Part shown: positions 5,167-8,100 of the stretch, piece by piece | Numbering within the stretch: the stretch's first letter is position 1 | Layout: the number at the start of each line of letters is the position of its first letter | Assembly: GCF_031769215.1 (NCBI RefSeq) | Contig: NW_026782525.1 | Coordinates: forward strand, 496,001-560,000 | DNA: 64,000 nucleotides | Reading direction: 5' to 3' | From: Ylistrum balloti | Lineage: Eukaryota | Notes under the pieces: generated by a model | Databases searched by the model: none | What the model saw: only the letters and a program-made list of their open reading frames with translations | What the model was told of the DNA's origin: nothing | Made by a program: the position numbers and the translations under genes

Positions 5167-8100
5167 GTAGGCATATCAATTTACCACAAATAGTTGATGG
5201 AATCCTATCTGACTGAACAATCATACTATTTGTCAGACTGGAGGACGGTAGGTATACTTTCCTCGTTGATATATATAACTGATATTGTTTGATCATTTAT
5301 GAGTGTGAAAAGATAAACTGTGCATGGTGATGATGTAGTCAAGGTCGCAGCACATGTCTCGATACACCCTACAGTGGATTAAATACTGCTATTGATCATG
5401 TTACACACAATTATGTTGCTTTTGATAGATTAGCATGTCCTTTTAAAATGCCAGTTCGACTTAGTATAAATATGCTGATATGCAATTAAGATATGATTAT
5501 GTGCAATTCAGTGTTCAAACGTGGACAGACTAACCTTGTTTTTTGTTTGTTATAAGTGATTGGGAAATGTGATACTCAGAGTTAACTCCTTTATAATTGC
5601 ACTTACCTTGGATAACCAGTATTATCCTCGGTCTGAGATTTTAATATATTTCTAAGCTGGATGGAAACACTATCTCAGTTACACTAAACTAAGAAAAGTT
5701 CGATGTGGAGTATTGTTGACTAAAATACATGGCTGCAATACAGCTAAGGTGAAAGCGTTCAGATTTCACGCATCTTCAATAATGTTTTAAGACTTAACAT
5801 CAGGCTTAACAGCACAATGCTGTGACAAACTAGGCATGTAGCTGTAAAGTCGAATTTGTTACGTGAGGGCAAACGTCTTTAGCATTTGGTAGATATTAAG
5901 CTTCAGAGTTTATCTATATGCAAAATATTCCTTGGATCAATGTCTCTAAAATTGTAATTACAGCCTTTATTTTTAACAATGCAATTATCGTGTTTATGAG
6001 AATTTATTACACGATAGGAAATTGGGTAAAATAAAAGTATGATGTTCAGTCTGAAAGCAAATGGGTTTGAATTAGATATTGGTACCTATCTAGAAAAATG
6101 ACAATGTAAATGGGGATGTGTTGTCTTTTAAAGATTTATTGACAATGATTAGACAACAGGGGTCTTGATGTGCTAATGTCAAGGTGGAAAGGTCTAAAGG
6201 TAAACAATTCCACGCCTCTTGGAAAAAGCTACAGAAGATTTGACTTAATCAAGTATTCAGGAACGTGACTGAGTATATGGAAAGGCAAAGGGTGAATACT
6301 GGACTTGCTGAATATATTATGAATTAAAAGAGAAGATTGAGACTTTGTTGGTTAATAATTATTCATTTGATACCACTGCAATTTTCGTTTTTTGTATAAA
6401 ATAGGAGGTGGATCTGATCAAACGCTGCCAGGAAAAGATGAGGAATACCATTGAACGCGCCAACGTTCAACTCGGGTAATATGATATGTGGAGAAGGATT
6501 AAATATATAAACAATTAAATCAACATTTTATTTTTAAAGACAGAAAAGAGCTTGCATATATCCCAAAACTTTCTTCGTGAAGTAAATAGATCATAATAGA
6601 TGTAATTATATGTTAGTATTGTGTTATTTCAAACATCGGAACAGTTTATAATCTTTCTTTTTATATATTTAGTCTTAACAGAGCTGCTCAACACGAGCTA
6701 GAGAAAGATGAAGGGGACAAATTTATTGCCCTTAACTTAGATGAAAATTGTCACGGATTACGTAACAACTCCAGAGGTCTTGCCTACCATAATGGAGTGA
6801 ACCATATTGATAACACGTAAGTTTTCATGTTTGTAATATTAATCAATGAACAACTAAATTTGTTCTTTTATTTTTGATAGTCTGGACAGAGCAGCTCAAC
6901 ATGAGTTAGAGAAAGATTCAGCTGACAAATTTGTAGCGAATAGTTTGGACGAAAATTGTCATGGATTGCGCAATTCTTCTCGTGGTATTGCTTACCACAA
7001 CGGCGTACAGAGAATTGACAACACGTGAGTTAGGGACGCCCTTTTGTCCAATCATTGGCGACATTACGTTTTGGTGTGGTGTGATTCCTCTTTTATCTGC
7101 TTTATACTGTTTGCATCACTCTGTTTTCAACCCGCATTGCAGCTTTCTGTTAGGGAAGTTTAAGCACCAATCGGTCTATAAGCACAAGTTCCTCGTGAGC
7201 AAATCTAGCGTTGTTGTCTTGGCATGATTTGTCACCGCTGTGACAAGGTCAGTGAAATAATATGCTGCATTTGTTCAGCAAGGTATCATTCTTTCATATA
7301 GCCTTGTGTGATTTTAAGCTTCTGCACATTATCTGGTTTGCTTGTTCCTTTCAATGAGTTTCTAACTTGCGTTTTAGAATATAAAATCACTCTACCATTA
7401 TATTCCCTTTCCATTTGGTAACTTCATATCAAGCTATCAAATACCCATTACAAGCATTTTGCTAAAAATTCTCGACGAATTTTCAGTTGTATGCGCTACA
7501 TGTAGTGTATAATCTATTACAACCATTGCGCAAAAGAAGTATTTAAAATAGTAGTATTAAGTGTAATTTTGACGCATGCAGTGTTGAATTTTGCTCAATG
7601 TTGCACTGTTATTCTTATAAACGCGACTTTTGAAATCAACTACATTGTAGTACCATAAATATTCAAATAAAGACAGAATTTCACGTTTGGATCTATTTAT
7701 TGTTATGTTTTGATATGGTTGTTGTAAATGGTGTTCCTTCTCGCTTATTCAGAGTATCTGTGCCTGAAACATGGGCTAAATTTAGCAACGACAACATCCA
7801 GCGTTCTCAGAGTGAACGAGCTGCCTCCAAGCAGATGAGGAACGAGATCGAAAGTGTGCTCAACTCTTGTGCCAACGACATGTGGCAAGAATGGAACTCT
7901 GTCAACGTTGCCTTGACCCAGCGTATTGGAGAGTCTACTGATGCCAGGAACAAGCTCCAGACTCACCTGTCCAAGGTAATATCAACAAACGTGGACAATG
8001 ATGGTATTGTACTTAATTCTTCTATTCTTTATTATGAGATAATTCAGTCTTAGAGAAAAAATATTTGGTAAAGTTTTGAATATGTGTCATTTGCAGGTCC

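Follow-up and report, generated by a model that had tools for sequence, protein, structure and literature searches.

Steric interference was reportedly identified by Smith and Nadal-Ginard in 1989 as the basis of the mutually exclusive choice between exons 2 and 3 of vertebrate alpha-tropomyosin. Five exon clusters of C. elegans (let-2 exons 9/10, egl-15 5A/5B, bet-2, gly-5 and gly-6) have intervening introns that are too short to excise and exons whose lengths are all multiples of three, and isoforms with the intervening intron excised were never observed (PMC4165533). In mammalian OGDH, exons 4a and 4b are reported to be mutually exclusive by a mechanism that rests on mapped distant branch points (PMC7969005). 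Here we consider a similar arrangement in the scallop Ylistrum balloti, found in a stretch of 64,000 nucleotides (nt) of forward-strand DNA (NCBI RefSeq assembly GCF_031769215.1, contig NW_026782525.1, positions 496,001 to 560,000), hereafter called the window and numbered from its first letter. The window carries a tektin-3-like gene with two tandem copies of its third coding exon, 3a and 3b. Taking all evidence together, we think it quite likely that the two exons are mutually exclusive, with 3b as the default and 3a as a minor or regulated alternative, and that exclusion is most likely steric.

The comparison with these systems brings out both shared and distinct traits. As in alpha-tropomyosin exons 2 and 3, adjacent homologous exons of a coiled-coil filament protein are used one per mRNA, with a donor and a branch point that would lie too close together; the alpha-tropomyosin intron, however, is long and has its branch point shifted toward the donor, whereas the whole tektin intron is tiny (64 nt) and its branch point only a candidate. 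With the C. elegans clusters the tektin gene shares homologous exon pairs in multiples of three, so that nonsense-mediated decay (NMD) cannot police the choice, and a very short intervening intron. The nematode introns measure 14-30 nt in a species whose known minimum is about 40 nt; the tektin intron, at 51-68 nt in seven molluscs, is shown only to be far below the other introns of its gene. The OGDH pair is alike in that the length of its intervening intron is described as evolutionarily restricted (PMC7969005); it differs in that its branch points were mapped, that of the tektin pair being a candidate read from sequence. This gene, with the same exon and its alternative segment of 48 residues, recurs in RefSeq tektin-3-like models X1 and X2 of Pecten, Argopecten, Crassostrea gigas and C. 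angulata, Ostrea edulis, Ruditapes philippinarum, Haliotis spp., Babylonia areolata and the nemertean Lineus longissimus. Those models are automatic predictions without a description, and the annotation of Ylistrum itself lacks the 3a isoform.

Exon 3a (6673-6816, plus strand) and exon 3b (6881-7024, plus strand) are both 144 nt long and in phase 2/2. The upstream copy has an open frame, encodes residues 264-311 and is bounded by the acceptor tttag/T and the donor AC/gtaagt; the downstream copy is bounded by gatag/T and AC/gtgagt. They match at 104 of 144 nt (72%) and at 37 of the 47 residues encoded by full codons (79%), with 19 codons differing synonymously only and 10 non-synonymously. The non-synonymous divergence (dN) amounts to about 0.15-0.17, and the synonymous divergence (dS) is above 2 or saturated. 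Each copy alone matches positions 149-194 of the Pfam Tektin profile (PF03148) above the gathering score, at E about 1e-10 (149-193 for 3a, 150-194 for 3b), and their resemblance is therefore not due to chance. No third copy was found in the gene by tblastn at E values up to 1. These figures bear out the original prediction, made from the letters alone, which had described two exons of equal length and phase with AG/GT sites, set 64 nt apart and differing at 10 of 47 residues and at many synonymous sites. It had also read them as an old tandem duplication with both copies under purifying selection, a reading that our results support. The product would have 507 amino acids (aa) with one copy, 555 with both and 459 with neither, all in frame and free of stops, as foreseen in the estimate of some 507 aa for single inclusion and 48 more for double.

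In the mechanism that we favour, each mRNA would keep exactly one copy and give a protein of 507 aa, and 10 residues, located in the L12 loop and the C-terminal half of rod helix 1B, would set the isoforms apart. A transcript with both copies would remain in frame and meet no barrier in NMD, and double inclusion would most likely be prevented physically: the 64-nt intron would leave no more than some 40-49 nt from the 3a donor to any usable branch point, such that the 3a donor and the 3b branch point could not be engaged together.

The intron between the copies (6817-6880, plus strand) starts with GTAAGT, has a pyrimidine tract and ends in AG; we propose that it is too short to splice. Its candidate branch point, actaa (6853-6857, plus strand), lies 40 nt from the 3a donor, counted from the donor G, where some 40 nt had been predicted, and 24 nt from the 3b acceptor. 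The surrounding motif acaact-aaa is partly conserved in four scallops. A distance from donor to branch point below 50 bp has been used as the criterion for potential steric interference (PMC5740500), and a branch point at least 15 nt from the 3b acceptor would be at most 49 nt from the 3a donor. The intervening intron measures 64 nt in Ylistrum, 68 nt in Pecten, 56 nt in Argopecten, 68 nt in Mizuhopecten, 51 nt in Crassostrea angulata, 53 nt in Haliotis asinina and 61 nt in Babylonia, thus 51-68 nt in seven molluscs, which represent four orders or more. All other introns of ten tektin loci (n=52) fall between 121 and 5179 nt, and those of the Ylistrum gene between 121 and 1238 nt. The length of this one intron has been kept where the others were free to vary, and therefore appears to be constrained. 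This conserved length is the strongest new support for steric exclusion, and the short-intron mechanism advanced in the original prediction, still a proposed one, gains from the comparison of 51-68 nt with at least 121 nt. That the 64-nt intron is the shortest had been stated for the whole window: it stands for the tektin gene, the scope of our check, and the window-wide part goes beyond it.

Two other ways of enforcing exclusion find no footing in the exon pair. With 144 = 3 x 48, the forms with both exons and with neither remain in frame, and NMD therefore cannot enforce exclusivity. Nor is there any U2/U12 incompatibility, all sites being of the U2 type (GT-AG), with donors GTAAGT or GTGAGT and with pyrimidine tracts.

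Transcript evidence on the locus came from the assembled contigs of four runs (X23, X25, X26 and X30), which report the presence of sequences and junctions but give only rough isoform ratios, and from which rare forms could escape. X23 is from the same species, with contigs about 100% identical to the window, and shows the joints 5164>6403, 6474>6880, 7024>7753, 7973>8095 and 8247>8559. Its spliced contigs span 4437-5164 and continue at 6403, and their route leads from exon 2 to 3b and on to exon 4, with 3a skipped. The other three runs, which follow the same 3b route at a word depth of 50-326, come from a related scallop with about 93% identity in the remaining exons. In X26 there is in addition a contig of 171 nt, at depth 19.9, with the joint 6472>6672, that is, exon 2 spliced to 3a, and it covers all of 3a. 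Unspliced contigs at depth 5-10 span 3a, the mini-intron and 3b. Neither the joint 6816>6881 (3a to 3b) nor the joint 6475>7753 (neither copy) occurs in any of the four runs. The expectation of single inclusion, with no routine transcripts holding both exons, thus fits the junctions: exon 2 to 3b to exon 4, exon 2 to 3a in the related scallop, and never 3a to 3b. From the balance of these routes, 3b is probably the default exon and 3a a minor or regulated alternative.

The frame would also be kept if both exons were normally included; the resulting tektin would have 555 aa and contain its helix 1B/L12 segment twice, and one deposited gene model of this kind exists: P0156 of Nucella lapillus (ACOMHN_049476, 554 aa) carries both copies in tandem, at residues 263-310 and 311-358. 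We give this explanation next to no chance. The joint 6474>6880 skips 3a in all four runs, where the 3a-to-3b joint is missing; the RefSeq and Logan-derived proteins are all single-copy; and both the Pfam profile and the TEKT3 structures are collinear with single inclusion. Among 384 tektins that we fetched, those bearing the segment hold exactly one copy, P0156 excepted, and short fragments lack the segment. The double inclusion in P0156 is probably an annotation error arising from the in-frame pair around a mini-intron.

Single inclusion of either exon type extends well beyond scallops. In Crassostrea gigas and Ostrea edulis, the paired RefSeq isoforms, compared over their full length, are distinguished by 12-13 residues, every one of them within the 48-residue segment. 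Isoforms with different versions of this 48-aa segment are also found in Pecten maximus, Argopecten irradians, Saccostrea, Ruditapes, Mercenaria, Haliotis, Gigantopelta, Babylonia and Pomacea, and likewise in the nemertean Lineus; in total, about a dozen molluscs and one nemertean have such RefSeq pairs. In P. maximus and A. irradians, X2 holds the 3a ortholog and X1/X3 hold the 3b ortholog. The isoforms of Branchiostoma show no difference within the segment. In oysters, the downstream-exon isoform (P0325) was found on 416 contigs and the upstream-exon isoform (P0269) on about 10. Seven of the latter were fetched from Logan (L002-L008) and are intronless, i.e. derived from transcripts; the accessions of the oyster runs with the upstream-exon isoform (SRR22252663, SRR20648593, SRR20648589, SRR8489867, SRR8489870, SRR11285556 and SRR8856675) were not found in the literature. 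The alignment of orthologous loci that had been proposed as a check places the exon pair at the same position of the gene across molluscs and in Lineus. From scallop to nemertean the exon sizes are the same (717/71/144/223/155/211 nt), exon 1 varying slightly.

Between scallop genera, dN/dS ranges from 0.06 to 0.18 for 3a and from 0.04 to 0.45 for 3b; therefore both copies are constrained as coding sequence wherever they are intact, and for 3a this purifying selection is seen in three genera (Ylistrum, Pecten and Argopecten). The dS between the copies (above 2 or saturated) contrasts with only 0.07-0.30 between the genera, and the 3a orthologs form a starred clade (99/81) in a tree of the 48-aa segment. 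From these two results it follows that the duplication is much older than the scallop genera. On the sequence comparison it would predate the split of Ylistrum, Pecten and Argopecten, and we claim no firmer age.

Several observations weigh against our account, and the first of them concern the use of 3a in Y. balloti itself. The depth of 3a in X23 is zero, in a run that is shallow (word depth about 9); no 3a-bearing contig was found from Ylistrum, where a share close to the depth ratio of X26 (roughly 7%) would be missed at the depth of X23. The RefSeq annotation of Ylistrum has the 3b form only. The 3a contig of X26 has its end precisely at 6816, as happens in assembly graphs where there is more than one continuation, and the downstream partner of 3a is not visible in it. 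Furthermore, the second copy is dispensable in some lineages. In Mizuhopecten yessoensis the 3a ortholog (L014, 7122-7265) has decayed: it has no acceptor AG, its donor GT has become AT, it carries an in-frame stop, and its first third cannot be aligned. Over the final 106 nt it retains 91.5% identity with the Ylistrum copy of 3a. RefSeq gives only 3b forms for this species, in agreement with the decay. Mytilus manages with one exon. All this could mean that 3a in Y. balloti is an unused relic that has not yet decayed, only the 3b isoform being made, as in Mizuhopecten. We hold this to be improbable: in Ylistrum the frame of 3a is open, and the exon is flanked by an AG acceptor and a donor that fits the consensus (GTAAGT); its changes with respect to Pecten and Argopecten are mostly synonymous (dN/dS 0.12-0.18); RefSeq isoforms of those two genera are of the 3a type; the exon is spliced to exon 2 in the related scallop; and X23 is too shallow to reveal a minor isoform. 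We infer that 3a is used in Y. balloti as well.

The remaining contrary observations concern the way in which exclusion is achieved. Many invertebrates splice introns of 50-65 nt. In Ruditapes (137 nt) and in Lineus (972 nt) the intervening intron is not tiny, and both have single-inclusion isoforms; these two must have another exclusion mechanism, and for the 137-nt Ruditapes intron a distant branch point could be the explanation. Exclusion might therefore be real throughout but set by trans-acting regulators, by competition between acceptors or by RNA structures, the short intron being a by-product of the duplication. A conserved block next to 3b could also be taken in this sense: the intronic stretch at 7025-7086 (plus strand) adjoins 3b and can be aligned in four scallop genera, in all of which its UG-rich 15-mer TTTGGTGTGGTGTGA (7070-7084) is invariant, whereas the upstream intron is unalignable. 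From its conservation the block is a candidate splicing regulator of the exon choice, and a UG-binding splicing factor is a candidate to bind it. In Crassostrea, Haliotis and Babylonia, too, TGTG motifs occur after the donor of the downstream exon.

We see in such non-steric exclusion a possible explanation, though a rather unlikely one for the scallop gene. Against it, the intron stays at 51-68 nt in seven species of four or more orders, next to introns of 121-5179 nt. Exon lengths in multiples of three exclude NMD, and every site is U2-type GT-AG. Competing RNA structures were looked for in three scallops by scans for inverted repeats and for duplex energy, and these revealed no pairing of the mini-intron with its flanking introns that was consistent or conserved: duplex energies beat the shuffled controls in 1 of 6 comparisons, and conservation of the sites is lacking, since Pecten and Argopecten do not keep the AT-rich matches of 12 nt (I7, I8 and I13). 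Steric exclusion by the short intron remains the explanation that we prefer for Ylistrum.

The history of the pair beyond scallops can be read only in outline, as the tree of the 48-column segment is mostly open. By approximately unbiased (AU) tests, the upstream exons of all molluscs may form one clade (p 0.47), and a duplication confined to scallops is likewise not rejected (p 0.54). The two copies of Lineus are each other's neighbours in the tree (98/91), as would be expected if they had duplicated separately or been homogenised. Of the 10 residues at which 3a and 3b differ, Mytilus, with its one exon, has 7 in common with 3a, and Pinctada has 5 in common with 3b. The chordate segments form a separate starred clade, with all spiralian exon copies apart from it. 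The vertebrate split into TEKT3 and TEKT5, to which the original prediction had drawn a parallel, is therefore an event independent of the spiralian exon pair; as a matter of orthology this part of the prediction is ruled out by the segment tree. A doubtful synthesis, which we offer with reserve, is that the pair arose once, before bivalves and gastropods split, and was kept as a switch by which tektin-3/5A has two forms of the helix 1B terminus and of the L12 clamp, allowing two kinds of filament in doublet microtubules (for example in sperm flagella as against epithelial or larval cilia), with an unspliceable intron enforcing the choice throughout. Under such a single origin, the states in Mytilus (a-type only), Pinctada (b-type) and Mizuhopecten (decayed a) would be secondary losses.

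What the exon choice may change in the protein was considered on an AlphaFold model (37 homologs, mean predicted local distance difference test (pLDDT) score 72.7, rod mostly above 90). The modelled helices span residues 114-221, 232-295 (1B), 316-422 and 433-494, with the L12 loop at 296-315. This is the tektin architecture of a four-helix rod (1A, 1B, 2A and 2B) with the linkers L1, L12 and L2, the nonapeptide RPNVELCRD lying in L2. According to the model, the alternative exon (residues 264-311) would supply the C-terminal half of helix 1B together with most of L12; of the ten residues that differ, seven are placed in helix 1B and three in L12. The motif LExDxxxKxxxxxIDxxC, which has been put at the end of helix 1B (PMC6357514), is present in the alternative exon. 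In the structure of bovine doublets, L12 of one monomer acts as a clamp on the L2 loop of the next (PMC8595878). That the two isoforms differ in their filament contacts is thus a reasonable inference from the model, and they may differ in function.

The gene is identified by its protein: the 3b isoform equals the tektin-3-like entry XP_060080119.1 of Ylistrum balloti at 507 of 507 residues, and the 3a isoform is 98% identical to it. Relatives were gathered by a profile-free search with exon 1, which led to full-length proteins, and by a word search from one of these, which gave a list of mollusc 'tektin-3-like' proteins. When solved structures are ranked, TEKT3 chains score 521-529 bits, TEKT5 411-428, and TEKT1, TEKT4 and TEKT2 at most 312; Platynereis tektin 3/5A is among the close matches of the word search. 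Because TEKT3 is the best-scoring solved relative and Platynereis tektin 3/5A is a close match, the gene can be placed by sequence in the spiralian tektin-3/5 class described in PMC6357514. The Pfam Tektin profile PF03148 is matched above its gathering score and collinearly along the protein.

The gene model has six coding exons, the third being 3a or 3b, and was reproduced exactly by spliced alignment of the RefSeq protein. All are on the plus strand. Coding exon 1 (4450-5166) has its ATG at 4450 and matches PF03148 positions 1-123 (146 bits), the acceptor used by the transcripts being near 4438. Exon 2 (6405-6475, 71 nt) provides the donor for 3a or 3b. Exon 4 (7753-7975, 223 nt) is the acceptor exon after 3a/3b, joined at 7024>7753; it encodes the start of helix 2A and matches PF03148 positions 197-269. 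Exon 5 (8097-8251, 155 nt) encodes the tektin nonapeptide RPNVELCRD, and exon 6 (8563-8776), the last coding exon, contains the stop codon and matches PF03148 positions 322-383. On conserved parts of exons 4 and 5 (window 7937-7966 and 8103-8182) we also noted contigs that carry 8-10 mismatches and whose 7966>8103 joint contains 15 foreign letters. These look like the mRNA of a paralogous tektin mapping across and not like an alternative junction of the tektin-3-like gene.

The 5' end of the gene shows further variation. An alternative upstream coding first exon can be placed at 1021-1087 (plus strand, 67 nt, MDCNLLTAKLSVGDGKKLYRCQ, donor GTAAGG). Joined to the acceptor at about 4438/4439, 11 nt before the main ATG, it is predicted to add 26 residues and give a protein of 533 aa. 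This form resembles the X1/X2 isoforms of Pecten, Argopecten and Mizuhopecten, and the RefSeq entry of Ylistrum lacks the upstream exon. The main transcripts have a different, non-coding leader (ending in CCGTAGGATCAAGTCTA), which is joined to them at about 4437. When a stretch of 13 bases from this leader was looked for in the whole window, no exact match came up, and the non-coding first exon therefore lies outside the window or differs in sequence. A gene of the ParA/CbiA family (328-349 aa) is found on the minus strand at positions 1-400 of L014, L016, L017, L019 and L020, head to head with the tektin gene. The pairing is present in four genera (Mizuhopecten, Pecten, Argopecten and Mytilus) and so constitutes a conserved gene neighbourhood. 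In Argopecten, a minus-strand gene model for fatty acid synthase spans the whole tektin locus.

A search of the literature on alternative exons in tektin found no description of them, and in the main survey of tektin evolution the words isoform, splic- and exon are all absent. The statement that no mutually exclusive tektin exon had been described thus stands for the papers searched; it does not stand for databases, where automated RefSeq models of related species already show both isoforms. What is known already is this set of automatic, undescribed predictions, and twin-exon splicing of this ordinary kind. For the annotations themselves, our results mean that a 3a isoform is missing from that of Ylistrum balloti and that at least one deposited model (that of Nucella) wrongly contains both copies.

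For the study of splicing, the tektin gene provides a cross-species case for the rule that mutually exclusive exons with lengths in multiples of three are kept apart by an unspliceable mini-intron, in which natural exceptions (Ruditapes and Lineus) and natural losses (Mizuhopecten and Mytilus) allow comparison. Tektins form hyperstable filaments within the A-tubule of ciliary and flagellar doublets, and vertebrates diversify them by means of paralogs, such as TEKT5 in sperm. In spiralians, a single tektin-3/5 gene would instead be diversified by the choice of an exon at the very spot where one monomer grips its neighbour, and this points to a defined segment in which filament assembly may be studied.

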